Part shown: one piece after another, positions 6,033 to 54,200 of the stretch | Layout of the letters: every line of letters starts with the position of its first letter | Numbering within the stretch: position 1 is the first letter of the stretch | Assembly (NCBI RefSeq): GCF_000150275.1 | Contig: NW_002060949.1 | Location: forward strand, 5,017,006 to 5,081,005 | Length of the DNA stretch: 64,000 nucleotides | DNA from: Trichoplax adhaerens | Taxonomy: Eukaryota; Animalia; Placozoa | Reading direction: 5' to 3' | The notes under the pieces: model-generated | Database searches by the model: none | The model's input: only the letters and a program-made list of their open reading frames with translations | What the model was told of the DNA's origin: nothing | Position numbers and translations under genes: made by a program

Positions 6033-7070
6033 TTATTGATAGTCATGTTCAGCTGGGAAGGTTATACCAGATCTTTGTAGAATGACACGTGCAGCATAAA
6101 TTCCACAACGAACACATTCAGTTATAGGTTTACCTTGGACCAATTGGCTCAAATAACCACCGGCGAAAGCATCTCCTGCTCCATTACTGTCTACAATGTC
6201 ATCTTGGTTGAGTGGTGGTACAGGAAACTCCATACATTCACCGTCGCGAACTACAATAACTGGATCTTGACTTTGAGTAATGATCACGATACGAGGATAC
6301 TTGGGATTCACCTTGGGCATAGCTGCTATTTTCTTACCAATTTCTTTCAAATCAGAGGTTCCAAACGAATGCTCTTTAGCAAAAACATCAAATTCAGTTT
6401 CATTACCGAATAAAATATCGATATAAGGGAAAATTCGCATCATGTCGTCCTTGACTAAGGTAATTAGATAAGGTGCGGAAATATTGGTTGCGAAAATTTT
6501 TCCATTGTCGTGGCTGTGCTTAGCGACAGTCATCATGGAGGAGGGTGAAACCTTTAAGAAATAACCTGAAGAATAGTAAATTTTGGCTTTTTCTACCCAA
6601 CGCCAATTTTCTTCTTTTAATAAATGCTCTTCCTTGTAATGTTCTGCGGCACCCAAGTTGGCGACTAAGGAACGATGCTTGTCGGTCAGCAAGACAGCAC
6701 AAGTTCCAGTTGGTTGTTCCGATGTCTGCATGTAATTGACTCTCAAGCCTTCATTGGTAGCGGCATTAATTAACAGATCAGCGAATTTATCCTTACCAAT
6801 ACAACCAATGTATGTGGTGACTTGCGGCTGACGTAATAACCACTGGGCTGTACGAATTGAATTTTGCGTAGCACCACCAGCAATAAAATCGCATTGATAT
6901 TTTTGCATCATTTGATCAAATAAAGGCAAGTGTTCCTCACCTGCCAAAATGGCATTATTGGCTTCCAAGTTGTACGCTTGTAGAAAGCTCTTATCAACAG
7001 GAGCGGAAATATCAAGTAATGGGTTACCCATACCAAAAAGTACTCCTTCTGGGATATCTGAATTAGCCAT
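6033..7070 (-). CDS. ADK: Adenosine kinase (PfkB/ribokinase family), single coding exon
   Basis: Uninterrupted 345-aa ORF with GMGNPLLDI, AGGATQNS, TGTCAVL, RSLVANLGAA, FGNETE and DSNGAGDAFAGG motifs typical of eukaryotic ADK. Confidence 0.95.
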   Translation of the reverse strand: MANSDIPEGVLFGMGNPLLDISAPVDKSFLQAYNLEANNAILAGEEHLPLFDQMMQKYQCDFIAGGATQNSIRTAQWLLRQPQVTTYIGCIGKDKFADLLINAATNEGLRVNYMQTSEQPTGTCAVLLTDKHRSLVANLGAAEHYKEEHLLKEENWRWVEKAKIYYSSGYFLKVSPSSMMTVAKHSHDNGKIFATNISAPYLITLVKDDMMRIFPYIDILFGNETEFDVFAKEHSFGTSDLKEIGKKIAAMPKVNPKYPRIVIITQSQDPVIVVRDGECMEFPVPPLNQDDIVDSNGAGDAFAGGYLSQLVQGKPITECVRCGIYAARVILQRSGITFPAEHDYQ

Positions 7071-23500: not shown

Positions 23501-26500
23501 TACTTAATTTAATTCATAAAATACTGAATATCTATAATTGCTTACACGAATAAGTTAATTTAGGATTTACATTCGGCCAAACCAAACGTATAGAAATGAT
23601 GTTAAAAGTAAATTTGCTAGTATCCAACACAATCAGCTTTACTTATTTAGACAATATTCACTCTTCGCTACGAAAGACAAACTCTTCGTAAATTATATAC
23701 TCCTGACTGAGAAACCCAAATATTATTTCAACTATTATAGCATGATAATATTAACTTAATGTTCTTTTCGACTGAACAATAGACTGATGGAATTACCGGA
23801 GAAACTTATACTTACGGCCAACTTAAGCAAATGATCCAACGATGTGCATCAGCGTTAACTCGATTAGGATTTCAATCCGGTGATATTATGTCTATAGTTA
23901 GTTTAAATTCGTTAGATTGGTCCATCATTTTCTTTGCAGTTATTGCTCTAGGTGGTATCGTGACAACATGTAGTCCCTTATTTACGCCTGAAGAATTAAA
24001 ATATCAATTGGAAGACGCTAATGCGAAGTATGTTATCGTCTCAGAATGTGCGGCCTCTAAAGTTAATAAAACCAATCATCCGTTTAGGCATAAATTTATA
24101 TTTGGCCATGCTGAAGGTTATATTCCGTATTCATCTCTAATTAGGTAAGAATAACTCAAACTCTCCTTGAATAACCTACCTTGAATACTAAATCTTTTGC
24201 TAATTCGATTATTAACCTCTAACCATTATCAGTACTAAGTTAGATTGTTATCATATTCTAATCTTAACAATAGAATTATTCTTCGTATTGTATAAAATGT
24301 TGGTCATGAGTTGCTTATCACTCATGTTATTCAAAATACTTCATTTCTAATATTATTATCTTCTTATCATAGGGATAGCGGCAATCAATTTCCAACTCTG
24401 GTTGTTATTAAACCTAAATCACATCTTTGCATTATTCCATACTCTAGTGGCACAACCGGTCTTCCTAAAGGTGTTATGTTAACCCACTACAATTTGGTTG
24501 CTAACTTGACTCAATATACTTATCGTGGCATGAGATCAGCTGATGATGTCGATCCAAGTGTTCTTTGCGTCTTACCATTCTATCATATCTTGGGCATGTG
24601 CTCCATCCTTTCGCTATCCCTTTCTAGTGGATCTCGAGTTGTTATCTTACCGCGTTTTCAACCCCACTCTTTCCTAGCGGCTATTGAGAAATTTCAGGTG
24701 ATGTATATGTCTATTTTAGTCGTTCCATTTAAAGGAATATTAAAGGTTTAAAAATCCAATTATTACGTACACTATAATTTCGGCTTAATTTTATTAACAT
24801 ATATTTCATCCATTCCATTTAGAGCAATATTAAAATTATAAAAAATCAAGTTATTATTATAATAATTTAGACGTAGGATAGTTTGAAGCGCAGTATTTAT
24901 ATATTAATACTCTGAATTATCAAGCATAGAATCTAAATAGCATTAATTATATCTCTTGCTTTAATTTCGAACATTTAATATTCGATAGAACTATCTATAG
25001 AGTACAATATAATTTTATTCATTCCATTTAGAGCAATACTAAAAGTATAAAAAATTGAATTATTACGGTACATTATAATTTAGCCATAGGGTCATTTAAA
25101 GCGCAATATTCTATATTTATAGACTGAATAGTCAAGCCTAGAACCTAAATAGCATTAATCATATCTGCTGCCTTAATTTTGAACATTTGACATCCGATAG
25201 AATTGTCGCTAGAGTACAATACGAAACCTTACTTTGCGTTTGATGTACGATTCTATGATATACATATGAATATATAGGTCACCCGCGTAGCTATAGTTCC
25301 TCCATTGGCATTATTCCTACTCAATTCACCATTAGTTGATCAATATAATCTTTCCAGCTTAAAAAACATAACATCAGGTGCTGCTCCACTCGATACCCAG
25401 TTAATGGAAAGGGTTAAAATGAAGCTAAATTTAGACCGATTCACACAAGGTATGTCCAATAAATTTATTTTATCGTTTTAGTACTAATAGTATTAAAATC
25501 TTGATGATCAAAAATTTTTACTTACCAAAATTAAAGTTTTAGATCAAAGATTAAATATTTAATGCTGTTATAGCATTAAATAAATATTTCATATAATAAA
25601 TCAAATATCATTGCTAACATTATCCCTTCCAGGATATGGCATGACGGAAACAGGTCCAACTACTATTATTAATCACTTCTGTAAAGCCAATACAAAATTA
25701 GGGTCTGTTGGAAAATTAATGCCTAGTACATACTGCAAAGTAAGAATAGATAACGTAACTACTTTTGATTAAAGATATATTTTTCTAATTCAGCCATATT
25801 GTCAGAGAATTTAGTCTAATGATAGATTTTAATACCTTTCTAAATATTTTACTTGCAAGATGCTACTTATAATCATTAATAATTGAGAATAATTTATCTT
25901 TCAACTACTTCCTATAATATACAACGAGTCACACGTAATTTGTTCGACGAATAAGTTAATAGATAATCTAATCTGTACATACGTATTGGATGGTTTATCA
26001 TTGAAGGTAGTCGATCTAATGACTCATCAAATTTTGCCAGCCAATGTGGCTGGCGAAATATGGATTAAAGGCCCACAAGTTATGGTGGGCTATTTAAATA
26101 AACCTCAACAAACGAGGGAAACGATTAATTCCGAAGGATGGTTAAAAACTGGAGATATCGGCTACTACGATGAAGATGAGGATTTCTACATTATTGATAG
26201 GCTCAAAGATCTTATTAAATATAAAGGCCATCAGGTAAGACTATTGAAGATAAGAACTATACCGTAGCAGTTTTAAATATCAGTAGTTCTGTACAAACGA
26301 TAGATGTAACTTAAACGCCAAAAATTTCGAAAGGTTGCTCCAGCAGAGTTAGAAGCCTTACTCAAAAGTTTTGATTATATTGCCGATGCAGCTGTCATTG
26401 GTATACCTGATACTGTAGCAGGAGAAATTCCGCGAGCTTATGTTATTTTAAAAGACAAGGAAGGTAAGATTATAAATTTTGGATATGTAATAAATGCACC

Positions 26501-31483: not shown

Positions 31484-34400
31484 ATGGGTTATTCTTTCAT
31501 CGTTTTTCTCCTGTTTTTACAATCTTGCTATGGATATGAAGAACAATCAAACAAGGTAGATAAACAGCTAGAGAATGAATGTTTCTATCGCGTATTAGCA
31601 GCATAATTTATAATATAATATTGGACAGAGTAAAATGAAATAGATGAAAATCTGATCATGATATGACCATATCACAGACAAAGTTAATCTTTTAGTTATT
31701 GTAGGTTAAAAAATCGTTCATAATTCTCAAATAGATGTACTTACATCTGTGTTACAAGTTACATTTAACCACTATCTAAAGCATTCTCAGATTCTCAAAA
31801 TTTAGCTGTAGTAACAAATCAAACTAAGTTGATTAGAAACTACGGTATAAAATTTTTGAAACCTTTATTCATTCCTATAAACCCAAATTATTCAAGTAGT
31901 TCGACTTTTATATCTATTTCCTGATAGCATAGATATTTTAATTTCAATCCCAACTTGAAGCTATACTTTAGAATCATTTTACGAAGAAACTGGATAAACG
32001 GAATTCATCATTTGAGCATTTACTAGTATCAATTCAACAATAGAAATCATATTTTGAAGAAGCATATATCATTCATTATGCTTATAGAAAGGAAAAGATA
32101 CTAGCAAGGATAAGATAAGCGCGTAATTTTGTAAAGTAACGATGATAAACATATCAATATGATGATGAAAAAATACTTTCCATCTTACATTAAAGTAGAG
32201 AGATTGAAAGCTTCTGCATAGAAATTGTCAGTTACCGTATATAGTATTTGGCACTCGTAAGCCAGTTAACAAAATTATCCATTGAATAAATTGATTTAAA
32301 AATAATTAATTGATTTTGATAAGATAGGAGTAAAAAGTGGTATCATTTAGAGAGTTATACTATATTATCATAATAGAAGATGAAAAGGCTCATGTAGTAA
32401 CTATTAGACGACCCAGAGCGAGTAAGAAATTATCCTATAAGGACATTTATTGCTTTTAATAGCCAGATATCGATTAACATCTAGCGTAGAAACTGATATC
32501 ACTTAGGGAACCATGCTATACTATAATTATACAAGATGAAAAAGTCTCACGTAGTTGTTAGATGACCCAAGCGACTGATAAAATTATCTTATAATGACAT
32601 TTATTTTTTTAATAGCGTGATATCAAGTTGCTTCTACTGTATTATGCACAGTATATACTAATTTACACGGCAGAATAGATTACATTAAAGAAAGGAATAA
32701 ATTAGTATGGCCAGATTCAATAATGTTATTTAAAGTTATAAAAATTATTCAATCCATAAGTCGATAATGAGACAATTCCATACTCTATTTATTAAAAAGA
32801 ATGAAAGTTATTTCCTTTTTCGTCAACACCGCATAATATTTCTATCAAGTCCATTCCATTTTGATTGACAGTTTTATTATTTTTCATGTGAAGGCAACTT
32901 ATGACTTTAACCTATAATTTTTTGTTTTTCTCTAATAAGTTACGTCTGTAATAGTTTGATTAAAGGTATTAATGCTTCTAATCGAGCCCTAGCATATAAT
33001 CTCCTTTAACCTAAAATTTTTAATGCCGTTAAGATCTACATCAATTTAATTAGTATATGAATTAATAATTTTGAAAGTAAAAAGCCTATAAAAATCTTCA
33101 AATATATTGCCTTCATATCATCATTTTACGGAATAATATAATTCATGTTTAAGTGTCTCCTTGTCATCGATTTTTCTATACTGTCTTATTCCTAATTTGT
33201 ATTAATTACAAAGTTCGGATATTCTAAGGGATACTGACGATTCTAATGGTAATAAAATTATTTCTATCATTCTGTTCTTAGATAAAAACAAAGTTAGCTA
33301 GCAGTATAACTACGCAAGCCTACTACGATAGTAATATCCATTCCTGTAGGCGGCTCGATCCAGTTGGACAGCGATANNNNNNNNNNNNNNNNNNNNNNNN
33401 NNNNNNNNNNNNNNNNNNNNNNNNNNNNNNNNNNNNNNNNNNNNNNNNNNNNNNNNNNNNNNNNNNNNNNNNNNNNNNNNNNNNNNNNNNNNNNNNNNNN
33501 NNNNNNNNNNNNNNNNNNNNNNNNNNNNNNNNNNNNNNNNNNNNNNNNNNNNNNNNNNNNNNNNNNNNNNNNNNNNNNNNNNNNNNNNNNNNNNNNNNNN
33601 NNNNNNNNNNNNNNNNNNNCTACAGCATGCGCTTATACGCCAGCAATGGCATTTATGTCGCTATGCGGTACTAACGTTCATTCTCATACATATAGCTTGT
33701 TGGATTGTACAAAACCATCTGACATGTATCATTGGCCTAAATATTGTCCTCCACTACCTACTCAGATTCGATTTCCACAATGGATGTTACCATTATTGAG
33801 TTCGCGTCGTACTACTGCCATAGCAGTTAAAAGCAATTTAATACAAACTCATGGGTTATATCATCAGTGCCTTGATCAAGCTACGACTATCATTTGTCAA
33901 TCGATACCATTTTGCTCTTCAGATGGGAAAAGATTACTTAGTGGTACAACAAAACAAGATTGTATATCGAAAACTTCCTGGTAAGTTTATGTGTGATGAA
34001 TGAATAACGAGAAATTATCCTATGTAAATATTAGACTAAGTTTATTATAATGACAGAGACTTACCTGCTACATGGTTTTGGAAAATGTTGTTTCTTATCT
34101 CTATAGCACTATTTACTTCCTAATTTTGAAGTCATCTACTGTAATTCTGTTTACAATAGGTAGTTGAATATGTAATTTCTAAATTTTAAGTACTTCTAGG
34201 ACTTACAAGTACAGTCATTCCTAGTTAAATTCACTCATACTAATTAGATTATTAGTGAAATGATGTTGAATACGTTTTGATTACGTATAGGTTCAATACT
34301 TTATGTAGGACTATTATTTACTGTAATATCTAATTATGTGTAAGCTATATCATTCAGAATATTAATGATATTCGTACACATAAGATTAAATGGTTATACC

Positions 34401-35158
34401 TAATTTTAATATCATATTATCTGCGTTATCGCTGACTTTGTTCCCATTTATTATCAATTTACGATCCTAATTCTTTACTCAGGATAATAAATGCTACATG
34501 CAGTATACTGTCATTTTGGTACTTTATCCGCCATACAATTATCACTAATTCTTATTCGTAATTATCAGTGCATCCTAGATATTTTCGTAGACTAAGGGAT
34601 ACCCATATATAACATAACGTATTCGTAGTTGCATACAATATTGGTCATAAAGAAATAATTCCGTAGTGTCTACCATTGATCAAAAAGCCCAGTGTAATTA
34701 ATCTTCGGTATTATAAATAATACCTTCATTATTGACAACGTTCAACACCTGCAATATTTGATAGTATTTACTGTACATATACTTCATGCGATAATATGCA
34801 AAATTAAACATCTAAAGAGGGGTAAACGTTTTGTCGTCGCTAATGGTCAGACTAAAATTAAAACTATAATTCTTTTTATAGTCTGACAGGTATTGCGAAA
34901 TTACTAGTCAACGCAACACTTGATTGTGGATCATTTCCAGACTCTGAGGCAAAACAAGAATTGATTGAATCTGATCAAGGCTATGGTGATTCCACTACAT
35001 TTATTCTACCAGAAACAACTACAAAAATTGTTTCTAGTATCGGTACTACCGTTGACTCAAGTCAAAAGAATATTAATGCTGCGCAGTCTTTTCTCGTTAC
35101 GTCAGTTAACAGTCTAGTCGCTTTAATTAGTATGACTATTATAATGATTTTACACTAA
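31484..35158 (+). CDS. Secreted, probably GPI-anchored protein with tandem Frizzled-like cysteine-rich domains, paralog A (interrupted by assembly gap)
   Basis: Exon 1 (31484-31555) is MGYSFIVFLLFLQSCYGYEEQSNK, a signal peptide. Exon 2 runs from 33282 across the gap to 33980, reading SNIHSCRRLD before the gap and C-x8-C-x5-C...CISKTS after it. Exon 3 (34882-35158) has CGSFP, a Ser/Thr-rich stalk, NAA and a hydrophobic C-terminus. Intron phases (0, 2) match paralog B. Confidence 0.78.
32377..32624. repeat. Direct duplication (~95 bp, period ~156 bp) in intron 1 of CRD gene A
   Basis: AAGATGAAAA..CTCAyGTAGT...TTAGAyGACCCA...AAATTATCyTATAA.GACATTTATT...GATATC at 32377 and 32533. Confidence 0.75.
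33377..33619. other. Assembly gap (243 N) inside coding exon 2 of CRD gene A
   Basis: Run of N. The reading frames on the two sides differ, so the length is probably only an estimate. Confidence 0.98.
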
Positions 35159-36081
35159 GATTGAAACACCAATAGCTACCTTAGGGAAGGATAAAAATAA
35201 TAAAAATACTCAAGGTCTACTATCATCATCAATATAAGCATTGATAAGACGCGCATTATTATAGTTATTAATTATTTAAATAAACAGTGTTTTAGTATCG
35301 GCAATAATCGAAGGTGGTATACTGTCAAAAAATCTGAATTTAGTAACTACTTATCTTAGTATTAGTAATGTTATGTGACGCTTTTAAAATAAATAATTTG
35401 CTATTGCATAATATGGTAATCATTATAGTGAGAAGGATCGTATAATTATAATTGTATGCTGTATTATCTAAATAAATTTATTAAGATTAATAAACTTTTA
35501 CACGTATGTATGAACATTGTATTATCAGTATGTATTCACAGATTTAGATTAAAACATTAAATTAAATATAACAATTTTGGGCTATGGTATAGTAAATTTT
35601 AAGTGGAAATTAACAATCCTCAAAGGAGATAATTGGTTCTTAGCTGCCCACTGAGCGCCATCTTTTCATGTGAATCAGAGGCTTTGTTTCGGTTTTTCAA
35701 ATGGCCGACATCCCTTCTATATATATTTTAATTTTTAAAGAAGAAGATATTAACACAGGATTGCATCACGAACATTGTCTATATCTTACGTGAGAGACGA
35801 AAATCACCATACTATAATTGTATAAACACCACATATCTTAATAGTATGAAAATTTCTTGATATGTTATTATTTCTTCATTTAAGAATGTTAGTAGACGTT
35901 ACAAATTTCTTAATGTATCAATTTAGGCATTGACTATGAGTTAATACTAATATATGTTGTTCTATCAATCAATGAAATATGGCTATAAACTCTCCATGCT
36001 ATCAAAATAGTACTAATATACTTAAGTAGATCTAATGTGTATTAAGTTGAACTATTAATAACCCCTAAATATACATACTTA

Positions 36082-39000
36082 TTAACTGTTTTCAATGGCA
36101 AAAAAACTATCTAGTAGCTGACTAGCAGTTTTTCTTAATGATTCATCATCTCGGTATAAGAGTAAATCTAACTCCTCTTGTATATTCAATTGATTCAGTA
36201 TGCGCTTGCCCTTTAATTTCGGTAAGAGATAGGATCGTTATCAAAAGCTATGTATTGCCTACTGTATTAATAAGGACAATATGAGCAGTACTTACATCGG
36301 GAATCGTCGCTATCGTAATCTGAATGATATCTAAGAACACTAATGCTTTATCCACATCTGCAGATTTTAAGTTAGCCGTAACAGCTAAAAGGTAAAATTA
36401 GTTTTATTAATAAGACAAAAAAATAAATTGGATAATTAAAAATTTGAAAGATACTAAAGTACGTAGCTATGCCGACCCCGAGCTAATTCTTGTGTATTCT
36501 TACCTTGCAAAGCGTTCAAACGGGCAAGATGCTGGATACAATCTGAGCCAAGACTAGCATAATTTCTTAAAGCCATAGCTGCCTAACATTAGCGAGTATT
36601 TTATTAACTTAGTCCTACGCAATCTCTTTATCAATAGACTATCATGAAATGTCAAATTAAGTCTACTTCTATTCCAATTTCATTGGCCCAAGAAAGTCGT
36701 TTAATAGCTTCCTTAATCAGCTCAATCCCACTCTCATTTATAACCGTTAAATTCACTTGAGATCCACCTATTCATACAATAATAAAGTATTCAACCCTGT
36801 TGTAGCTATATTCAAATTATAGCTTCTTAATTGCTGATATAATACGCCAAATACATACTTACATAATAGATTTGAAAATAACCAAAAAATTTCCTTAACC
36901 ACGTGACTTGATAAAAATATTAAAATAAGATCATTTTATTCATGAAATACCAATAAATTCGTACTCAGATGATATCCCCAGTTTTTTGCCGAAGCCACCG
37001 TTAGTATAAAATAATTTATGCACCTATGAGTATTATGGTTAATCCAGTATATTAAATCATTTAAAATTCTTGGTTCTTCCAAAATTAAGGCATTAAATTC
37101 ATCTAATCCACCCGCAAGATTTCCAATAATTCTAATAGCTGGTGTTAGAATCTGAAATATAAAAATATTGACCTTCACAATTAATGTCCATAGACAAAGT
37201 TAAAGTAAGAATTCTAACATAATTAATATAACATAGACCTACTTTAATTTGGTAATTTCGTGATTCCGTTAAAAAGCGAATGACTTTTGTTACTAGCTTT
37301 ACAATATTAGTCGATAATAAGACACTGTCATATCCGTCCCTACAATAATTAAAATAGAAGTAAATTTTATTGAAGGAACTAGCGTTTATATTGCATGAAA
37401 ATAGCTCACTTGGCAGTAATATGATGCAGTAGATGTAATATATCAGGCAAAATCGTAAAAGATATCTTATCTTCCTTATCAAATTGAAGGTGGTTCGTCA
37501 AGTACTTCAAGACGTTACAATCTATCATTTCTCTATAAGATTTATAAAGATATACAATACATTAATTACATAAACACTATAAGTTGTATAGCCGACTTTA
37601 CCTCTACTGACAACATATATATAATAGGAACTAATAAAAGTAATAATATAAATTTTAATATAGACGTACTTGAGGTTAATATCATCTTCCCTGGTGAAAT
37701 TGGAGAGTGCAAATGCAGCAGATTGTATAACATTTTCAGATGTTGCCTAAAAATGTTATTGAATGGATGGAATAAAAACTTCAAGTCTACAGTATACTTT
37801 TAATCGAAATTCGTTGCTAAATCCTATCTGCTCTATGTTAAATAAAAGTCAAAAATTTACGTTTAATAGTGATACTAGAGGTTTGGTGACACCCTGTTTG
37901 ACTAATAATTTCCGAGATTTTTTACCATCCCCAGCCATGTTCCCAATAGCCCAAGCACATTGATCCTAAGATAATGAGACGGTAGACTAAGGTATGAATA
38001 ACTAAAGCATACAGCACTATAGAAAAATTTATACATTAGGATTTAAAGTAATAAATAATTATATAATTAATAAATCTATAGGATGTGTATAATACGTGAA
38101 ATGATAGTTATCTCCATAATTACAGTGCATAGTAAAAAATACCTGCATCGCCAAATTTTGTCCAGACAGGTAAGTAATACAATATGGGGCAGCCAGACGC
38201 GTTACTTGTAGCGTTTGTTTATGATTTCCTGTACAAATATTGGTAATGCACCAAGCAGCATGCTCCTGCAAATCTGAATCACTCTGGGTTAAGATACCGA
38301 TTAGTGATTGTAGAGCATTGTCGACACTACAGACGGATAGGAAATAAAATTCACGATTAAACCTGAAGTTAATGCGATAGAATATCAATATATGTCGTGT
38401 ATATAGTGAGAGATGAATTATAAAATTGTAATTTACTGCCTTCCTTCACAGGCAACTTAATAGTAGTGTCTGCTTATGTTAGAACTAGTTACCCTAGAAA
38501 TGTTGAGATTAAGGCCTCATCTTGAGTAAAAGCTCTGCATAAATTCTTCAGTATATCCATTCTGGAATTATTATGCTTTAGCAATCCTCGAGCCAGGGTC
38601 TGTACCTTTAAGAGATACGTACATACTGGTATTAAGCAAAGACACTACAGATTAATCAGTAAAACATTTCTAAATTTATTCTAGAACTTAATTCTACGTT
38701 GCGAATCTACCATTTTACTGACTGGATCCAATAATTTGTATGCAACTTACATGATTGCTATCATAGTACTGTTCATCCTGGACGTTATCGTTAAAATATC
38801 GAGGTCTTTTTGATGAAATTAATTGATCTCGTTGTCGGCGTATAAAATCTACCAAGAATAAATTGGAGGAAATTATCAGCTGGAAGGATTCGACATCATC
38901 CTTCAAGATACTGATAGAAAATAGTAATCTACCTTACACATCTTTTACTAGATACTGGATTATTTAAATCATGGAACTTGTCATGTTTAAGAGAAATAAG

Positions 39001-39129
39001 TAAGAAATAGGGTAGGATAACTGATCTTATTTTCAATTTACCTTGTTGTTGTTTGCGACGATCATTTCGACGATCTTCAATTTGATCACTAGCATGCTTA
39101 TACAAATGACTATGATCTAGACTAGCCAT
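36082..39129 (-). CDS. TMCO6: TMCO6-like importin-alpha-related armadillo-repeat protein; 14 coding exons
   Basis: The traced exons join in frame from MASLDHSHLYKH...RRNDRRKQQQDFIRRQRDQLISSKR (IBB-like). They continue through LQEHAAWCITNI, YCITYLSG..MQDQCAWAIGNMAGD, SAAFALSN, TPAIRIIGNL and KEIFWLFSNL to ASQLLDSFFAIENS*. The divergent ARM repeats fit TMCO6 better than canonical KPNA. Confidence 0.75.
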
Positions 39130-39994
39130 AATTTGTACCAAAATATGATTCAGTAGTATTTTTCCTCCACAAGCTAGTAACTTTTAGCTAAATGAATGAA
39201 TATGCTGACAATATCACTGAAAAAATAAAATCGATCCAAACGATCTTGTAGATTATACAGCTTTGTACGCTAACACCAGCTGATGAATCCTAACGTAACC
39301 AATTTTTTGGATAACTTTATGACGAAATGAAGTAATAACAGGCAAAATTTTGAGTTTAATGAGTGGTAAAACTATTTCAAGTTAATAAAATGAGGTAAAA
39401 TAGCCAAATAGAAGCGAATTCGATATGAAATTACTCCATCATCACGGAATATTTTGCATGGTTGCAGCTGAGCAAGGTAGAGGTGCTTGCCTGCAGCGAG
39501 CTGTCTAGCCTGGATATGGAGAGCAAAGTAAATTTTAGGATAGTGTCCAATACAATCGTCTTTTATACAGTATTTAGACTAAGCTAAGTTGTCAAGCAGC
39601 GAAATCGCGACCAAACATTGCTTTTTACTGAGGTGATAAATCAATTTCAACCTAATCTAATATAGTACAGTATGAACATTGTACTAATGTTTAGAACATT
39701 ATATAACCTAAAGGATACAAGAAGTCATATTAAATAAGGATTATCGAGGGGTAGTATAACAAAATAATTTTTGCAATCTAAGGCTTTGTATAGGAGTATA
39801 AAACTGTTGTCTTAGTAATATGAAAATTAATCTGCTTGGAATTATAAAATATCTCATTCAGAGGATTTTGCAGATTTTTTTCTAGTTTTCTGTTCGGTCT
39901 AATCATCAGACAAGAATAATTAGCTAAAAGATAGTTCCAAAATTGCAGTATGCAATGTACAGTATAATCGATAAAGGCGAAGAGCGACTTCATT

Positions 39995-41170
39995 TCTCAT
40001 TTAAGCTGCTACCGCAATCATCAATATATCGTAGCTAAGGTGAACGCATTCGTATATAGATTAAATATACGGCATATATATATAATGGAGCAAGAGCTCG
40101 AAATAATTAGGCGGGTGGTGAATATCACCACTATATATACAGTATAGGCGTAAATAAAATGCTATAATTGTTATATGCTGACATATTCAATTAAATAGCA
40201 GTATATAATTGATAAGGATTCCGAGCTACTTTTTGATGACTTAGAATCGAATAATGATTGGATGTATACAGGATACTTCTAGGTGTAAATTAAATGCTAC
40301 AATTGTTATATGTTAACATATTCAGCGAATAGCAGTTTAGAACTGGCAAGAATGCTGAGCTACGTTTTGATTACTTGTAATTTAACTTAAGCTGTTACCG
40401 CAATTTTAACTATATCATTGCCAATATAATGATTCGTATATTTATATATGTAATAAGAGTCCCTAATACTTAGACAAAGAAAGAATAAATATTTTGATAG
40501 TATAGGCAGCGTAGTGTAACTAAAATCCCGTAATCGTCATATACTATACTTATGTCTTTAATTAATATAAGTATGAAACTACTATATTAGTATAATTGGT
40601 AAAAATACTGACTTACTTTTTGATGACTTAGCAATTAAAGCTATCAGCTACTACCGCTGTTTTAACTATGTCATTCATAAACTACCAATAGCTTGGATAA
40701 TAAATTGATGAACTTTTCCAAGCTCTATCTTGAATTCTAGTCATGGCCAATGTAATTATTTATATATTTATAACTGTAGCAAGAGTTTGTAATAGTTAGA
40801 TAAAGAATGAATATTTTGACAATATAGTTAGCGTAGTGGAACTGAAATCCCATAATTGTCATTCATATACTGTACTTAGATAGTTAATTAATATTAGCAT
40901 GAAATTTCTTTTATTGTAATGATTAAAATTTTGTTCGTACATCAATATTATCATGTATACAGTGCAGTGCTCTATGGTTATTGGATAGCGATTTCACATA
41001 TTTCATTAATATAGAGCATGAGATAAATATCGTTTCTTTTATTATAATGATTCAAAATTTTTATTCGCTAATCGGTATTGTTAGGTTCGCTGTTTCTTGG
41101 TGGTGATTTCATATATTCAATTAATATAAACCATGAAATAAATATCATTTCTTTTTTTCTACTGTATCAA
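39995..41170. repeat. Nested degenerate tandem duplications between TMCO6-like and CRD gene B
   Basis: Recurrent blocks: AGCTryTACCGC (about 40004, 40391, 40647), AAATGCTAyAATTGTTATATG (about 40157, 40292), AGCGTAGTG.AACT.AAATCCC (about 40508, 40830) and ATTAATAT...CATGArAT (about 40887, 41005, 41120). Confidence 0.75.
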
Positions 41171-41976
41171 AGATTCTACTCATAGATCAATTTTATAGGG
41201 TTTGCAGCATTGCTATTGATGATTTACAAGCATTTCATAGTAATTCTAAAAAAATCTTCATGCAATTGTTTTACTGAATGCCGTAATATTTCTTTTATCA
41301 AATATTACCAATAATTCAACTACAACTCAGTCTTTTTTAAAGATGCAAGCACGTAGACGACTGTAGATTACGAGAGTAATAGTCTGTCTACGAACTGTCT
41401 CAATTCGATAATATAATATACCAAAATTGATTCGATTAGTAATATAATTATTATCAACCTAGCTATGATCTTAATTATAACAGCGCTTCAATCGTAATGG
41501 AAGCCTTTGGTATTATTCTTAGCACTATTTTTCCTAAAATGATTGATTTAGACATATTGTTATAGTCGTAATAGATAACAGCAGGAAATAAAACTTATAG
41601 TTATCCCTGAAATTTTTAGTAAATTTTATTTTGTACCTCATCGAACTCATTGATTTTGCAATCATTAATAATTGCTACTATTTCTTTACATAATGCTTTA
41701 ACACGGTACCTGTGTCGCCATGGAAAAGAGTCCTGTTTTGTTTGTATAATAAAATCTTGGGTGACATTCAATTGATAGTTTATCGAAGGTCATAGATCTA
41801 ATTTATTCATTTTTATTGTCTATCCGGTCATACTAAATAACCCTTTGTAATTTTTCTCAATATGATCTTCACAGGAGTAAGACTTAATTATTCAATTTGC
41901 TATTCATATATTTGTTCATCATTTCCGACTACACTTATTCTATCCATTTCGCTAAAAAGCGACACCAGCCAAAAAT

Positions 41977-44900
41977 ATGAATTTTAAAATATCACTCCTC
42001 TTCGGTTGCATCATCTTGAATACGTTGCATATTAGTGACTGCCATGGCTATAACCAAGCTGATACAAAGGTAATTCTTGATGGGAAATATAAAAACTATC
42101 TTTCATTTAAATGCTATAAGATTAGACGGTAGTAATTATCAAAATTTGTTTTACACCGTCTAACATAACCGGATGATTATACAGTATTGAAATTTAAATC
42201 AAGTTTGCATCTTTTGCTGTCATAAAGTCATTTCTTTCTAATATGCGCGTATAGAAATATGTCGTCAATTTTAGAGAATATCTATGAGACTATTAGGCAA
42301 TCGAGATGATTTAATTTTCCATTTAATATCTTTACTTTATCGTTTCTTCTAAAATGTCTAATAAATGCTCGGGTTAATTTCATTGTATATTTCAATCCGC
42401 TCACAATGAAGATGGTAAATTTCAAATAACAACCGTCATGTGCTTGGTTAAAATAATCAGCACATTAGCAAAAGTATGCTTTGAAATAAATCACTTATTT
42501 CCTAAGATAATCCTGTTTGAATCAACGTCAAAAATGAAAAAATTTACATAATTGATATATTCCGACTTGGATAAGTTGTTCATCCTTACAGTCTCATTCA
42601 GTGTGTCTACCACGTTGCAAAAACCTTCATAATTAATGACTTTTCCAAAATGTACTGCAGGCCTATAGAAAGAAACTAATTTGAGCTCGTCATGAATAGT
42701 GCATTAAAATGCAATTGTATTGTACTCCATCATAATAGCAAATGACAACCTCGCTAGGTGTTACTGTCTTGATAAAGGTAATTTATTAATTTTAGGAAAA
42801 TGCTTAATCCTATTCTGACATCTCCCTATCTTATGTTAGCAGATTCTTTTTTATTTCCATCATCTATGTATTTTCATTTCTAAACATATTAGAGATATCT
42901 TAAAATTTGTGTAATATCGTAAAATTTGTTTCAATTCCAGCGTCCTAGAGTTTTGTAGTTGATTTATATCTTATATTTAGCTGTTGCCATGAATAGAGAA
43001 GTCCTTGACTAAGGAAATCTATTGTGTGCTTCTATTTCTAATTTCCAATATCGAATTTTTTATATGGTTACCCTAAGAAATACATGAATGTTACCAAAGT
43101 GTATTCTTGTGATAAAAATATGCCGGAGATATTTCTTGACCTTCTATCTCGAACTACTTATCAAGATCACTTCTCTATGACAACTATGAACTTCTTCCTA
43201 AAGCTTTGCTACAGAAACTCTATAGACCGTCTCCTTACCCATAAATGATAAAATAAGCTCTCTTTATCGTAAAAAGTAATTCGCTTTTATACCTTCTGTC
43301 TATATTCACGAGCGCCTTCAGTTTATAAAAATAGAAATAGTAACCAATGATATTGCTATCGTTTATTCTTATATCTAAATTTGTATAACTTTGTGCTCTA
43401 CTTTAAATATACTCTAAGAGCACACATAGAATACGAGATCAGTCATGATCAGAACAAAATCTGACCTTTGAGCCTCTATAAATTAGGAATCGAACTAATT
43501 CACTTGCTATTATAGGAAAATGAATTAGTTTTACAATTCTATAACTCTAATAACAAGCTGTCTGCTCTACAATAATTAATACCATAAATTGACACTTCAC
43601 GGCGATCTTTAACACCGTGACACTGAAATCTTAATATCCTTTTCAGCCTAGGCCTATTTACTTACTGGTATATTTTTAGCATATTTCTTACCATCACACG
43701 TGTACAGTTGATCACATAAAACGAGAAGTTATAGTCACAAATTTAAATTCGTAAAAGTTAATGATATGCAAATGAGATTTGACGTTAAATAATATTATGA
43801 ATTTAATAGCTTTCTGGCTTTACTCTTCCGTAGCCACCCCCTAATTATAATGAGCAAAAACTAGAATTCAATAAATTCCGAAATAGCCTGGAGTTTTTCC
43901 ACATTAAGAAATGATAATTTATCGATCAAACATTAAACTCCTGTACACACGTAGAAGTAAGAAGAACTATACATTATAGCAACATCTACCATAATATCCC
44001 AGCGAGGGGTGGTAACAATTGCATCCCAAGCTGTTATAGGGTAGACAATGAAGTGGAACGACTTCTACTAATTTATTTTAAAATTTGTTTTCAAGGAATA
44101 TAGCCGTATAATCTAGTAGTTTAGCTTGTAAAATAGACCTATTATAATTATCTGAATAAATGTATGTATACTGTTATTACAAATCAAAAATTTTATAACG
44201 ACGACGAAATATAAAACTAAAACAGATAATAAATACTAGTCTACTGCAAGATTATCCACTCCGACATTGACCTGTAGTACAATTCTAAACACTGACGATA
44301 GTAACACCGCTAGTGTCTCTCAGACAAAACTGAACCTAGACTTTGTTAAATAATCTGCTAATTTATAGTACAATGGCATAACATCAGTACTTAGATAATG
44401 TTATAAAATGTTGCAAATATCTATTAAAAATAAGTAAGAGGTCATAGATTAATTAATACCAACACACTCCTAGATAAAGTCATCCTATGAAAACTAAGTT
44501 ACGACCACTATATTAAAGTTACTTCGCAGCAACTGTACATATTAATATCAATTTATTTGTCTTTTCTATCCCCTTCGATGAATATTTACCTAATATGAAA
44601 CGAGCAATAAAGTTCGAAATATGTATACTTTATCATTCTGATTTTTGATAGAGATGGCAATATTAGAAAGCTTCAATTAACTTTTGCTACGATTAGCCTT
44701 GCAACCTTCAAATTATAGCTCTGGCCAAAGTTTAAAAATATAAATTCATCGAGAAGAATTTGACAGCTACGCGCTACTGTCTATATATTATATTTTGCTG
44801 CATAGATAGAGTCCATACTTTAGTAAGTTACCAAAATTGTACCTTAGAATAATATCACATGACAAGCTTTGAATTCACTTACCCATAATTAAATTTATAT

Positions 44901-47136
44901 GCATTTAAGGATGTAAATGATGAACTTATGTCGCTATCCATTTTCTATTCGCAAGACTATTATATTTATAAAATAACCTCATATACGTATTGTATAATTT
45001 AACGCCATTTGATTCATTTACTTACGAACCATTAACTTGTGCTAATTTAAATTTTTGACATAATGCATGCCTCTACGCTACGACGATATTAACTGTGGTT
45101 TCGATAGAGTATTCCTACAAAATACGTTAATCTATACTGTTTCATTAAGACTAATATTCGGTAAATCGTATAACTATCTTGAAAATGAATTGGATTGGAT
45201 ATTAATTATTAATCTATTACTCAAGAACAAGTCCACTAGTCTCCTGTATTACAATGGCGAAGATAAGAAGTCAATTATATAGAGCCCATTATATCGTATC
45301 GCCTTGTAAAGATGATAGAGACTAGACTAAACATTTGTTCTACCGTGTGAATGTAATATTATGAAGATCAAATTGTCTAGACGATGTTAAGAGCAGAGAT
45401 CATACTATATAGTGAAACAGCAGCCTAAGTTTAAAAACTTAATGGCCACGATATTTGATCAATAATTTGATAATGATGGATATTAACTGTCGAGGTTAAC
45501 TTTTGCAACGAAATGCTGTCATCATTTAAATTGTTTATTTAATCTATATCGTATCCTATGGAAATAAGATGTTTAAAAAATATTTTTAATAGGCTGTCAA
45601 CGTTCTACTTTTAAAAGTATTGAAATTTTTAAAATGCAATGCAGTTCCTTATCATAATAATTTCGTAACGTCTAAAATTTTATGGCGATTCAATGTTATA
45701 AAGGAATAACTAATTTACATATTTATTAGCTTGATAGGGTCAAGCGTGCAAACATGCAAGTTCATGTCTTTAGTAATATCGATTCTTGCTCCACCTTGGA
45801 CATCAGAACCAGCCAATTCTGTGGTTCTACCTTTCAAACACCAACTGTAGCGAGTAAATTTCAAACTTTGCAATTTCATACTCATGCAAATGCCTTTGAT
45901 CGTCTGCCATCGTTATCAAACAGCTGCAAAAATGCTATTAAAAAGGTTTTATGTAGATTTAGCTTCCCTCAATGTGTTCCAACTAACAAAACTGTTATTT
46001 GGTATAATACTGCTAGTGTATGCAGCCAAATGAATTCGATTTGTGGTAAAGCTGCACTTAATTTTACTTATATGTGTGCAAGATCACCTAAAATTGAAAG
46101 TTTGACCACTTGTGTATCACCACCCAGAATGAATATGACAGCTGGTAGACCTACTGGTGGGCCTACTAGTGGACAACCAAGGTGTCCAACACTACCACCT
46201 AATATTAAATTTCCCAAATGGATTTTAAGTGTTCTATCTAATCGACGTTTGCGCAGTGCAATGTCCATTAAAGCAAGTATAGGTGGATTTAATAATATAT
46301 CAAATCAATGCATCCAGCGAAGTGTTGATGCAGTTTGTAGATCTGTTCCATATTGTTCACCTGATGGTACGAAATTGCTTCTAAGCATGAATGAAAAAAC
46401 TTGCGAATCAAGAACTAATTGGTAAATATAGCATATAAAGTGCATATTATATGAGTAGTTTATGTCATGTTTTTCTTTTTTTTATGTAATTTGCAATGAC
46501 TTATTGCTCTAGTAAACAACATAATTCTTAACGCATTCATAAAGATAGAAGTAACAATTTGCATACTCAAACTATACGTATACTTTAATATTTTAGGCCA
46601 TTTTAGATGTAAAGAAGCAGTAAAATAATAAAAGTAGTCATTTTTAGCCGAATAATTATTAGATTAATTATAATTTTATTCCCTCTCTTATAAGTTAATA
46701 ATCATTAGTAACGATTTATAGTGCTAGGCAAGCAATATATTTTAGATACAATTTTAGATACAATCACGAAAAAAGTTATAACAAGTCGCATAGGATTAGC
46801 TTAGATTAAAAAAGCCGTAGACCTATCATAACTTGTCTAATTTCAATTTCTTGCTCATTTTTGACGCAAAAAATAGCAAACAATGATATCAGCCAATTGA
46901 TACAAATAGTAATCAGATTAATAGTAATTTTATTCGCCTCTAGCTTACCTACCAAAGGTAAAGAAATGTTAAACTACATCATGGGATGTTCCGGCTTTCC
47001 TGCAGAAAATAGCCAACAAATATCCATTCAAAATACTCAAGGCTACAGTGGCTCTGACGTCAACTCTGCTCAAAGGATAATATTGACTCTTAATTGTTTG
47101 CTATACATGATTATCGTCGTGTTTATGTTGGTTTAA
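41977..47136 (+). CDS. Secreted, probably GPI-anchored protein with two tandem 8-Cys Frizzled/Smoothened-like CRDs, paralog B (~325 aa)
   Basis: Exon 1 (41977-42069) is MNFKISLLFGCIILNTLHISDCHGYNQADTK. Exon 2 (45730-46421) begins LDRVKR and contains CKNAIKKVLCRFSFPQC, CSQMNSIC and CIQRSVDAVCRSVPYC. Exon 3 (46944-47136) has CSGFP, VNSAQR and a hydrophobic tail with no cytoplasmic residues. All junctions are GT-AG and in frame. Confidence 0.85.
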
Positions 47137-51200: not shown

Positions 51201-54200
51201 TTTAACCCATCAAGTGCATTTTCTACCATATTCTTATCATCACTATCGATTTCATTTAAAAGAACGGTCAAGATTTCATCAAAAGCAACATCGCCTGTGG
51301 AAAATGAATTTTTAGTTTAGTCAATCATAATTAAAGATAGAAATAAAATTTCTGTTAGAAAAACTACGCACCAGTTCTGTCATGAAGATTGTGAAAAGAT
51401 TTAGCCGCAGCCACTCTAACATCCTGTATATCATCGCATAATACTTTACGAATAACTGCCACCAAGGCATCAATAAATTGCAAAACCTATACGGTAGCAA
51501 ATCCAGTTTTAAACATTTCTCAATCAATATGATACCATAGTTAACTACAAACAAGTAGGATAAAGTAGGAGATAGTTACTTGTTCTCTACTTATGCATGA
51601 GATGATTGCACCCAATCCAATACATGTGCCTTTTCTTCTAATAACGTCATCATCTTCAATTCCTTGTTCTAGAATTGGAATCATCTCTGGTAAGACCCGG
51701 TCTCCTAATTTTGTTACTAAATCTGTTAAGCTAGCAGTGGCCATCTGCAAGTAAAGATATTCAAATATTAACTTATGAAGCGCATTTTAAATGAGTGTAA
51801 ACTGCTACAGCTACGCACATGTCTCATATCCAAGCTAGAGCTAGCAAGACAACCAATAAGCTTCACAAATAGGTTAGGCAGCATTTCGCGTAAAGCCTTC
51901 GGCGTATTGATAACAATAACTTTCCATACGTGCATAGCAGCTTGTCGAACCAAGTGCGCAGCATCTGATCTACACATATAGAGACCAGAAAGTACTCGAT
52001 CGCGACGTCCTCGACCTAATGCACCTAAAATCGACTACGTCAACAATCATAACATTTATTAATAAAAGTCGAAAAAACTGTACTGAGCGTAAAATAATTT
52101 AAGACGAATACAACCTGCATCGAATTTTCTGTACCAAAGTTTTCTTCTTCTTTACCTTCTGTACTCATTTTACCAGTAACGCCAGATAAATGGAAAAGTA
52201 AATCACCGCACAATTGTACAGAACTAAAACGGATGCGCCAATTATCATCAAGCAATCCAGCTTCAAGTTGAGGTAGAAATAATGATATGGCAGTTTTAGA
52301 GTATAAACTAATAATTAGTTGAGCTGCCCGGAGAGAAGTATCTCTTACATATTCTGTTTCATCAGCTAGACCCTAAGAGAAAAGCCGTTGTTGTACTAAT
52401 TAGTGTTTTATCACTAATATTGCCATTACCAAGAACTATAGCATAACAGCACCATTACCATGGAGGATAAATTTTACCTGTAGTACGCTAGGTATGATAC
52501 TACCAATAAATGGAGAGAAATCATCTTTAAATGTCATTGGTAAATAAATAAAGAGCATCAAGTATCCATCTCTGACATTTGGTGGCACATCTCTTCGTTG
52601 AGTCGTTGCAATTATATCAGGGAGTAGTTTTTCAAGTCTCTCCAAGCCCAATCCGTATACAACTTCGCTTAGACCTATCGAAAATCCAATGAACGTTACG
52701 CTTTACATAATATTCTAAAAAACTATGTTAATACTGTATTAATGCACTAGAGTTATTGATATTTGCTATACCTTGAGCCGCTCCAGATCTATCTACAGTA
52801 CTGGTATCAGTTACTAATTTATCCAATAACCAAGGCAATAAATCCTGAAAGGGTTGTTCTCCCATCCCTTTCACAAGAACTCCAAGTGCTTTAGAAGAAA
52901 CGTGTCTCACCTACAATTTTAAGTCATACATTAAAGTATCAGGACTAAACTTATAACATAAAAATTTAATATTCCATAAAAAACGTAAACTACATTAGGC
53001 ATCGGGTCCAAAAGAGCTTGCTTTAAACCAGGTACAATCGAAGGTAAGTACGGCGCTAAATCCTATAATAAAATAATTACTTCTTACTTCTTAATTTTAC
53101 TAACGGCTTTTACTTTCGTAAGGTCATTACTAATCATAACTAATCAATCTTAATCACTATTAATCATTACTTTCATATCAGTTAATGTAAACATATTGCC
53201 AATAATTTGAGATGCCATCTTCTTCGTCTCAGATGATCGTTGCTGCAATGCTCTATGGATAACTGGCATAATGAGGGCTAAAGATGGTGCATCAATAAAG
53301 TGCACGAAAGATGTTGACAGTAATGTTTGCAAGCAAGTTGCCGTATGAATAGTCGGCTCACTGAGAGCATCAATTAGAATCGATGATATATCTACAAATA
53401 CAACATTGGTTGTCATTAAAGTTATTAATAAAATGTTTATAAGGATAAAAGAGATAATAACGTCATTTGTAAAGTTACTTTGTATTTCAGGATTTTTAAT
53501 AACGGAAGCAATCTGCTTCAGCGCATGTAAGCCAGCATGTTGTACTTTAGCATGTGAATCGCCTAAAATATCTACAAGGTTAGGCACTATATTTGGAAGG
53601 CATGATGATAACTGCTTAGGAGCACAGTGAGCCATAGCTCCGAGTAGTTCTACACTACCAGTTTTAGTTCGCCAAGAATCTTCTTTTAGAGCATCCAACA
53701 ATGATGGAAAAATCAGTTTAACACCATGAGCACTTAATTTCTGCATGATTACTTTTGCTGCATCCTCTGTTGCCTAAGTTAATTTTAATTTTAATACTGT
53801 TTAACTTAACATCATCGTGCCGATCTTAATCGATAATTAAGGAAATCTATTGATGATTTTAAAACCAAGAAATTTACCTCTCTAACGTATTGGTTTCCAT
53901 CGCCGAAGCAAGTTAATAAATGAGGTAAAATTACTACGATATACGGCTCGAATATTCTACCAAGCAAAGAGAATAATATCTCCAAAGCAAATAATGACCC
54001 TTCCGAAATACCGTACAAAAATATTTTAAAAGCAAATAAAACATAGTTCATATTTGAATATTATATGAAATCCACAGTATTAAAACCTTCTCTTCGTTTA
54101 TAGTTTTTCTTATCTTGTATAGCTTCTTCCAGTGCCGACATAATGTTTAATTGTTTCAATGATAATATTCCAAGACCTTTCACAATACCCGCCAGTCCGT

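Follow-up and report, generated by a model that had tools for sequence, protein, structure and literature searches.

What kind of protein is encoded by two neighbouring genes of Trichoplax adhaerens that combine cysteine-rich domains (CRDs) of the Frizzled type with hydrophobic ends, and what might such proteins bind? The window, a stretch of 64,000 nucleotides of this placozoan's genome, contains gene A (31484-35158; TRIADDRAFT_58363) and gene B (41977-47136; TRIADDRAFT_58365), both on the + strand and with three exons each. We find that A and B are sister paralogues in a family without a name and that they encode small surface proteins. The best explanation overall, to which we assign a probability of about 45%, is that these double-CRD proteins capture lipids or small molecules.

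Results

We first consider gene B, which is free of assembly gaps. Exon 1 (41977..42069) carries the ATG and a hydrophobic signal peptide in 31 codons, identical to residues 1-31 of the Trichoplax sp. H2 protein P0169, and closes with a GT donor in phase 0; exon 1 of gene A ends alike. Exon 2 (45730..46421) is preceded by a TAG acceptor and encodes a pro-segment with R-V-K-R at 45736-45747, CRD 1 (first Cys at 45787, eighth at 46075-46077), a Pro/Gly-rich insertion and CRD 2, which begins with a Cys at 46111 and continues until a cysteine codon that is split by the intron. The exon ends in TG (46420-46421) followed by gtaaat, and the first base of exon 3 (46944..47136) gives TG+C, a Cys. Exon 3 then encodes the last helix of CRD 2 with the Cys of a C-x2-FP motif (46987-46989), a stalk, N-S-A at 47062-47070, a hydrophobic tail (47077-47133) and the stop codon (47134-47136).

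Gene A follows the same plan. Its exon 1 (31484..31555) holds the ATG and signal peptide in 24 codons identical to residues 1-24 of the H2 protein P0170, with the donor in phase 0. Exon 2 as a whole spans 33282-33980 and is broken by an unstranded run of 243 N (33377..33619). The part before the gap (33282..33376) encodes a linker and the first Cys of CRD 1 (codon 33345-33347) in 31 codons identical to P0170 residues 25-55; the part after it (33620..33980) encodes the end of CRD 1, with its final two cysteines, and then CRD 2 as far as the split Cys, in 119 codons identical to residues 130-248. Here the TG lies at 33979-33980, and TG+T at the junction with exon 3 (34882..35158) again makes a Cys. 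That last exon completes CRD 2 with its final helix (C-x2-FP Cys at 34925-34927), then runs through the stalk, N-A-A (35075-35083) and the hydrophobic tail (35087-35155) to the stop codon (35156-35158).

Public models agree with these structures. P0169 (325 aa) and P0170 (340 aa) contain all pieces encoded in the window, with a single substitution each relative to the three-exon models, and the spliced T. adhaerens models P0001 and P0029 have exon 2/3 junctions identical to ours, P0029 sharing the split Cys of gene A. The prediction of two paralogous three-exon genes is thus upheld by the exons and the H2 models. With 243 N, the reading frames flanking the gap in gene A are one base out of step in this assembly; the H2 orthologue spans the same stretch uninterrupted with 74 residues (~218 nt), and, judged from P0170, five of the eight cysteines in CRD 1 (the second through sixth in chain order) lie in the gap. 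Because the orthologue fills the gapped stretch, gene A is probably intact.

The ends of the proteins probably represent a signal peptide and a GPI anchor, as had been proposed. On inspection of exons 1 and of 17 last exons from the family, the layout was a signal peptide and a hydrophobic C terminus without a cytoplasmic tail. In 16 of the 17 last exons the protein ends in a hydrophobic stretch of ~16-18 residues with a few residues at most after it (mean Kyte-Doolittle value of 1.3-2.7 for the final 18 residues); the sole exception is a broken locus, L016. Small residues precede the tail in most cases, with N-S-A in B and N-A-A in A as candidate sites, and some tails contain a charged residue. 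Onward splicing to transmembrane or kinase exons would have spoken for a different protein; none follows, as both genes stop in exon 3 and the H2 models end at 325 and 340 aa. At the other end, a dibasic site (RVKR in B; R-x-x-R or K-R) closes the pro-segment in about half of the paralogues. Gene A lacks such a site, so that cleavage of the pro-segment is not general. The architecture is very probably a signal peptide, a short pro-segment, two eight-cysteine CRDs, a short stalk and a tail-less hydrophobic C terminus.

Recounting the cysteines on the sequences confirmed the original prediction. In B, successive cysteines are separated by 10, 34, 8, 6, 15, 6 and 10 residues in domain 1 and by 23, 41, 8, 5, 15, 5 and 14 in domain 2, where the final Cys is followed by x2-FP; all eight domain-2 cysteines are kept in A. 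The core of the canonical Frizzled CRD reads C3-x8-C4-x6-C5 and C7-x6-C8. The corresponding spacings are 8, 6 and 6 in domain 1 of A and B and 8, 5 and 5 in domain 2, which agrees with a Frizzled-type core, and the pattern is kept across a 60-sequence alignment. Each domain has eight cysteines, however, and not the canonical ten (five disulfides). Neither domain has a cysteine where canonical C6 and C10 would lie, and in the alignment with Ror2 the first Cys of its C-x3-C pair (canonical C6) stands opposite a non-cysteine. By alignment, from which the pairing is read, the C6-C10 disulfide appears to be absent, as had been anticipated.

Profile and structure comparisons both place the two domains among Frizzled-type CRDs. 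Against the curated cut-off of 32.1 bits for Pfam Fz (PF01392), B scored 34.6 bits (P0001) and 34.1 bits (P0169), with two matched stretches each; exon 2 of B alone scored 31.7 bits over residues 18-114 of the exon and the orthologue of A scored 29.1 bits, under the cut-off. The profile matched 13 of 16 family members at E <= 1. Searches against PDB profiles returned 22 and then 50 matches, all of them CRDs of Frizzled, Smoothened, Ror2, MuSK or sFRP (best 5e-5). Ror2 was the top match of the placozoan-only profile, and the wider profile matched FZD3, FZD6, FZD5, FZD8, Smoothened and sFRP3. A non-FZ predicted fold had been set beforehand as a test; the AF2 models (pLDDT 79 and 83, pTM 0.75) instead superposed on Fz-type CRDs, which made up the entire top 11 and top 12 in comparisons with 48,161 chains. 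Domain 1 matched at Z of 5.2-7.3 (best 7.3 and 7.0) and domain 2 at 5.2 (FZD2) and 6.5 (MuSK, 124 residues aligned); these values are moderate, unrelated chains beginning at Z ~4.3. Foldseek on the predicted structures gave no significant match. Identity in the structural matches to Wnt-binding CRDs is 10-22%, and the ranking among CRD types spans less than 1 Z unit, so that closeness to ROR2 is not separable from closeness to other CRDs. When domain 1 was aligned to domain 2 with hhalign, the cysteines fell in register and the probability was 93.7% (E 3e-8); judged from sequence, the two CRDs arose by internal duplication. Both domains are Frizzled-type CRDs, and since they have eight cysteines each and a non-cysteine at canonical C6, we assign them to a divergent eight-cysteine subtype distinct from canonical FZ-CRDs.

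The pair belongs to a larger family. Trichoplax has ~25 loci of the double-CRD type, arranged in tandem clusters, and the paralogues are 22-32% identical to B. These loci retain a common cysteine scaffold, and the split Cys codon and tail exon are kept in 14 of the 15 full-length intact loci examined; the pattern seen in A and B is therefore more than chance. The whole two-domain profile also matches relatives in the octocorals Xenia and Dendronephthya, in the hydrozoan Hydractinia and on many eukaryotic contigs. Among the eukaryotic-contig genes, at least four have the same split-cysteine intron and three show a GPI-type last exon, and the Dendronephthya protein and eukaryotic-contig relatives share the GPI-type end. 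The description of the family as lineage-specific is thus only partly borne out: the pair belongs to a placozoan set of ~25 loci, but there are these octocoral, hydrozoan and other relatives. Our literature search found no paper describing a GPI-type double-CRD family of this sort, consistent with the earlier failure to recognise a named one.

Among known proteins, both domains come structurally nearest to the CRDs of ROR2, Drosophila Nrk and MuSK (Z 7.3, 7.0 and 6.5; ~100-124 residues aligned), with which they share the C3-x8-C4-x6-C5 core and the helical form of the CRD. The CRDs of these proteins have ten cysteines and sit beside Ig and Kringle domains in receptor tyrosine kinases, whereas A and B consist of two lone eight-cysteine CRDs and a GPI-type tail; we rejected a ROR/MuSK-type receptor tyrosine kinase, as A and B have no Ig, Kringle, TM or kinase Pfam match and a tail-less hydrophobic end. 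The CRDs of Frizzled, sFRP and Smoothened are linked to B by its Pfam Fz score and by fold matches at Z 5-6, but A and B lack a 7TM bundle and a netrin domain, and identity in those matches is just 10-18%. A Frizzled receptor (class F GPCR) was rejected on the lack of a Frizzled 7TM Pfam match and the stop in exon 3, and a secreted Frizzled-related protein on the lack of an NTR Pfam match, the second half of the protein being another CRD. RECK, which contains a Frizzled-like CRD, and the glypicans are GPI-anchored surface proteins that modulate Wnt signalling, but they are far larger and multi-domain, and we found no sequence relationship between them and A or B. Corin has two Frizzled-type CRDs in a single polypeptide, but these are non-adjacent; it belongs to the type II transmembrane serine proteases, with LDLa and SRCR domains besides the protease domain, and it is not GPI-anchored.

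Two further families resemble A and B in layout. GAS1 has two helical cysteine-rich (GFR-alpha-like) domains and a GPI anchor and binds a lipid-modified morphogen. Its layout is analogous but its domain family differs, and A and B gave no GDNF-receptor Pfam match at E <= 1. The folate receptor/riboflavin-binding protein family (PF03024) comprises small proteins with 16 cysteines and a GPI anchor, which capture a small ligand at the cell surface; they have one domain and another cysteine spacing, as against two CRDs in A and B, and no Pfam Folate_rec match was found at E <= 1. This family also appeared as an Atlas feature neighbour (score 0.81-0.83), which we note as a lead only.

Discussion

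How would such proteins work? The precursor would enter the ER, and GPI transamidase would replace its C-terminal peptide by a GPI anchor at a small-residue site; the pro-segment may be cut back by a furin-type convertase. On the outer leaflet of the membrane, the protein would then present its two helical CRDs as a ligand-capture module. As the ligand we tentatively propose a lipid or hydrophobic small molecule, of fatty acyl or sterol-like type, taken from the environment or food. We place it ahead of Wnt because ~25 divergent paralogues in tandem arrays contrast with two Frizzleds and one sFRP in Trichoplax (PMC13128682), and because several CRDs of the same fold bind lipids. The Smoothened CRD with 20(S)-hydroxycholesterol (5kzv) is among the structural matches, and in the Nrk CRD a fatty acid lies buried and is non-exchangeable (bioRxiv 10.1101/2021.04.29.442059). 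The original prediction stated that this fold binds Wnt palmitoleate or sterols; lipid binding is borne out for Smoothened and Nrk but is not general, and since CRDs of the ROR2 and Nrk type are the nearest with a solved structure and the human ROR2 CRD has no hydrophobic lipid pocket (PMC11219042), it cannot be assumed from the fold.

Could the proteins instead be membrane-tethered Wnt modulators, whose CRDs bind the Wnts of Trichoplax and serve as decoys or co-receptors in the manner of a GPI-anchored sFRP, RECK or glypican? Every sequence and structural neighbour is the CRD of a Wnt or Hedgehog pathway receptor, and GPI-anchored Wnt co-receptors exist, RECK having been described as one (PMC6588345). 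Trichoplax moreover lacks Dkk, WIF-1 and Cerberus and has its single sFRP, which leaves room for other antagonists; ~25 fast-diverging paralogues are nevertheless disproportionate to its small Wnt/Frizzled repertoire (PMC13128682). Resemblance to Wnt-binding CRDs is weak, with low identities and Pfam scores at the cut-off, and the C6-C10 disulfide is apparently missing. We consider this reading, and Wnt as the ligand, rather unlikely.

More doubtful still is that A and B are lipid-free recognition modules that, like ROR2, bind proteins or glycans and serve adhesion or the recognition of microbes, food, or self and non-self. The pocketless ROR2 CRD stands with Nrk and MuSK at the top of the structural neighbours, and environment-facing recognition genes typically expand in this way, as tandem arrays of copies with low mutual identity; the narrow spread of Z values among CRD types, however, does not single out ROR2. 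Lipid-free protein recognition is a low-ranking ligand class, the remaining weight falling to other possibilities.

There is little to recommend a version in which the proteins are not GPI-anchored and carry a tail-less membrane anchor or are simply secreted. The charged residues in some tails and the reading of the omega site by inspection would allow it, but the near-uniform hydrophobic ends with mostly small residues upstream, and the like ends of the Dendronephthya protein and eukaryotic-contig relatives, argue against it; type I membrane proteins, moreover, normally carry a basic cytoplasmic stop-transfer tail. That the genes are dead or an artefact of annotation or assembly is very improbable: an assembly gap breaks gene A and two further loci of the family show visible damage (a TGA at a cysteine position in one, a frameshift in the other), but the exons outside the gap are open with canonical splice sites and >99% identity to the H2 proteins, a probable orthologue of A in a Logan transcript assembly (P0033) is 62% identical, and the cysteine scaffold persists across the 60 aligned sequences.

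Lipid or small-molecule capture by surface double-CRD proteins therefore remains our preferred reading. It is conceivable, if speculative, that A and B belong to an ancient animal family of GPI-anchored double-CRD proteins that predates the placozoan/cnidarian split, keeps one intron position (a Cys codon split TG|Y), is apparently absent from annotated bilaterian genomes, acts as a tethered binder of Wnts or of other lipid-modified or lipid ligands, and expanded to ~25 genes in placozoans. If so, it would supply a class of extracellular regulator hitherto missing from early-animal signalling or, alternatively, represent a lipid or nutrient receptor of a new class.

Gene structure of the two paralogues

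The DNA of the window is AT-rich and eukaryotic. TRIADDRAFT_58365 of Trichoplax adhaerens matches the large exon of gene B at 100% identity, and the source genome is therefore that of this placozoan. Three plus-strand exons make up B: exon 1 (41977-42069) opens with an ATG, encodes a hydrophobic leader and ends at a GT donor in phase 0, exon 2 (45730-46421) ends with TG ahead of a GT donor, and exon 3 (46944-47136) starts with a pyrimidine. Its paralogue A (TRIADDRAFT_58363), also on the plus strand, has a typical leader in exon 1 (31484-31555), the same TG ahead of a GT donor at the 3' end of exon 2 (33282-33980) and a pyrimidine as the first base of exon 3 (34882-35158). In both genes, therefore, the second intron splits a cysteine codon.

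We used public spliced models for whole-protein analyses. The T. adhaerens models of B (P0001, 286 aa) and A (P0029, 203 aa) are truncated; full-length orthologues are available from Trichoplax sp. H2 as P0169 (TrispH2_002889, 325 aa) for B and P0170 (TrispH2_002887, 340 aa) for A. The H2 proteins include all of the window-encoded pieces of A and B with one substitution each, which bears out both the remote exons for the signal peptides and the 325-aa length of B proposed in the original prediction, and their models contain no exons beyond exon 3. On inspection, both first exons read as typical leaders, in keeping with predicted signal peptides. A and B share 32% identity, and a quick tree placed them as sisters (SH-aLRT 98).

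Exon 2 of A is interrupted by an assembly gap of 243 N (33377-33619) that places the flanking frames one base apart, so that the continuity of this exon is not demonstrable from the assembly. The H2 orthologue has 74 residues (~218 nt) across the gap, and these supply cysteines two to six of the eight in domain 1, counted along the chain. Judged from the orthologue that fills the gap, A is most likely intact in the T. adhaerens strain, with a complete first domain.

A and B are separated by an unrelated minus-strand gene (36936-39141), one exon of which matches the Armadillo repeat (Pfam Arm, E 4e-6), so the two are not strictly adjacent. The window also holds a pfkB-family sugar kinase as a single 345-aa ORF (6036-7070, minus strand), two AMP-binding (acyl-CoA synthetase-like) exons (914-1327 and 24311-24748, both plus strand) and one EF3/GCN1-type HEAT-repeat exon (53153-53746, minus strand).

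Both domains are Frizzled-type cysteine-rich domains

Each domain contains eight cysteines, with spacings in A and B exactly as first described. The Pfam Fz model matched B at 34.6 bits (P0001) and 34.1 bits (P0169), each with two matched stretches (cut-off 32.1), and scored the orthologue of A at 29.1 bits, below that cut-off; matches were found in 13 of 16 family members, and in the relative from the octocoral Dendronephthya the best stretch lay in domain 2. When the family profile was compared with the PDB, it matched solely the cysteine-rich domains (CRDs) of Ror2, MuSK, sFRP3, Frizzleds and Smoothened, with 22 matches for a placozoan-only profile and 50 for a 60-sequence profile (best, FZD3 at 5e-5).

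AF2 models of the two proteins were graded confident (pLDDT 79 and 83, pTM 0.75). In an all-against-all structural comparison with 48,161 chains, the 11 top-ranked chains for B and the 12 top-ranked for A were Frizzled-type CRDs. Domain 1 scored highest against Drosophila Ror2/Nrk (Z 7.3, rmsd 2.9, 101 aligned) and human ROR2 (Z 7.0, rmsd 3.6, 107 aligned), and domain 2 reached Z 6.5 against MuSK (124 aligned) and Z 5.2 against FZD2. Unrelated chains appeared from about Z 4.3 downward. We assign both domains to the Frizzled type, as had been proposed, because the Pfam matches, the PDB profile matches and the structural comparison agree, with Z values that are moderate and with Foldseek returning no match to the PDB at E < 0.001 for either model.

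The two domains also match each other in profile-profile comparison (93.7% probability, E 3e-8, 109 columns) with their cysteines in register, which makes the protein an internal duplication of a single CRD. Alignment with Ror2 places a non-cysteine residue opposite the first cysteine of the C-x3-C pair of Ror2, which fits the earlier view that the canonical C6-C10 pair would be missing. Domain 2 of B alone carries a Pro/Gly/Thr-rich insertion of ~11 residues between its first two cysteines (46114-46179, residues ~160-181), and the AF2 model is of low confidence there. Membership of A and B in the Frizzled, sFRP, ROR, folate receptor and GAS1/GFR-alpha families was rejected in each case by membership tests.

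Protein ends

After the leader, B has an R-V-K-R motif (45736-45747). About half of the paralogues have R-x-x-R or K-R at the corresponding place, and A has neither. Downstream of the leader, a dibasic K-R-K or K-R site is also present in P0048 from Xenia and in several relatives that either group with it or belong to a set of ORFs ending in tryptophan (see below).

Last exons were located by one common rule in 17 family loci. They begin with the split cysteine, usually followed by L-P. Next come C-x2-[F/Y/L]-P and a short stalk, and then ~16-18 hydrophobic residues that reach the stop codon or end a few residues short of it; the tail was weak in only one of the 17, a broken locus. By inspection, the tail-less hydrophobic C termini of A and B resemble a classical GPI signal, as first suggested. 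The sequence describes a predicted protein of the secretory pathway that carries two CRDs and has a hydrophobic end lacking a tail.

A gene family that extends beyond placozoans

A profile search of the Trichoplax genome gave 29 matches, which we counted as ~25 loci. Most lie in tandem clusters on three contigs, and the paralogues are 22-32% identical to B. Two loci look broken (assembly G000, C1404:1920591-1921247 and C1412:6711175-6711821), one having a TGA at the position of the second cysteine of domain 2 and the other a frameshift between the domains. A small unplaced contig (C1099:590-1261) carries a near-identical copy, with a few substitutions, of the cluster gene at C1412:6719112-6719783; this contig probably represents an allele or an uncollapsed haplotype and not an extra paralogue.

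The genome also has the two true Frizzleds as well as other loci with CRDs. Fz-domain exons form two more tandem clusters (C1414:10945006-10949816 and C1378:322392-329655), which align with the whole length of the canonical Pfam model and are absent from the A/B-family profile matches; they look like another CRD-only family of Trichoplax. Runs of 6-11 Frizzled-like CRD repeats were also noted in three large uncharacterised proteins, P0037 (Oculina patagonica, 859 aa), P0045 (Oryzias melastigma, 1379 aa) and P0088 (2283 aa), of which P0037 has both a transmembrane helix and a cytoplasmic tail.

A full search with the profile against 1.84 billion representatives returned 202 matches, ~36 of them placozoan-like. 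A second tier consisted of proteins of 230-345 aa aligned across the whole two-domain profile. Its named members, all uncharacterised, come from two octocorals, Xenia and Dendronephthya, and from the hydrozoan Hydractinia; a larger group comes from eukaryotic contigs and transcripts (sample codes include ERZ25069326, ERZ24894574, ERZ19433661, GCA_029782575.1 and SRR19300263), in which the called ORFs end in tryptophan because they read through the same TG|GT donor. The next exon was located in three of four such contigs examined, and the best candidates start with the split cysteine, continue to Cys-x2-[F/L/W]-P and finish with a stalk rich in Ser/Thr/Pro and a hydrophobic tail. P0054, a transcript-derived member, has the same architecture in one piece. 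On this evidence, placozoans share the design and its intron with much more distant organisms. The original prediction of a lineage-specific family therefore held only in part: with relatives in cnidarians and other eukaryotic contigs sharing the intron and the tail, the design is conserved and not peculiar to one species.

Word-index protein searches were nearly blind to the family: exon 2 of B returned no sequence but its own, and a 24-sequence alignment and the member P0040 found three proteins each, none of them named. Atlas searches with two family sequences gave feature-level leads only, with unreliable taxa.

Candidate ligands and significance

The domain and its fold are already known, and UniProt applies the automatic tag 'FZ domain-containing protein'. 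What is new is the architecture of two tandem eight-cysteine CRDs on a GPI-type tail, together with the ~25-gene expansion, the cross-phylum range and the conserved split-cysteine intron. We found no description of a double-CRD family in the literature searched, and the A and B gene identifiers did not appear in the papers searched or in the supplementary material to the placozoan cell atlas. Earlier CRD phylogenies dropped two-thirds of CRD sequences, those outside the Frizzled/sFRP clade (PMC3516229), and the A/B family was probably among those set aside.

We propose that these proteins would act as a GPI-anchored ligand-capture module. Frizzled-type CRDs bind sterols or fatty acids in Smoothened (5kzv) and Nrk (bioRxiv 10.1101/2021.04.29.442059), and we tentatively favour a lipid or other hydrophobic small molecule, captured at the cell surface, as the ligand (probability roughly 0.4). 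This choice weighs those lipid-binding CRDs, and the number of genes relative to the Wnt toolkit, with the CRD of human ROR2, the nearest solved type, which has no lipid pocket (PMC11219042). That structure would favour lipid-free recognition, a less probable but serious alternative. A role as Wnt modulators is a somewhat stronger rival, though also less probable than lipid capture. Placozoan body patterning uses Wnt signalling and most known secreted Wnt antagonists are missing; Trichoplax has two Frizzleds and one sFRP and lacks Dkk, WIF-1 and Cerberus (PMC13128682). Against such a role, ~25 divergent tandem genes are out of proportion to so small a Wnt toolkit.

A large surface family consisting only of Frizzled-type CRDs is an obvious candidate source of extra Wnt regulators in placozoans. 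If its members do not bind Wnt, the family would represent a new use of the fold, for example in capturing lipids or nutrients at the feeding surface.
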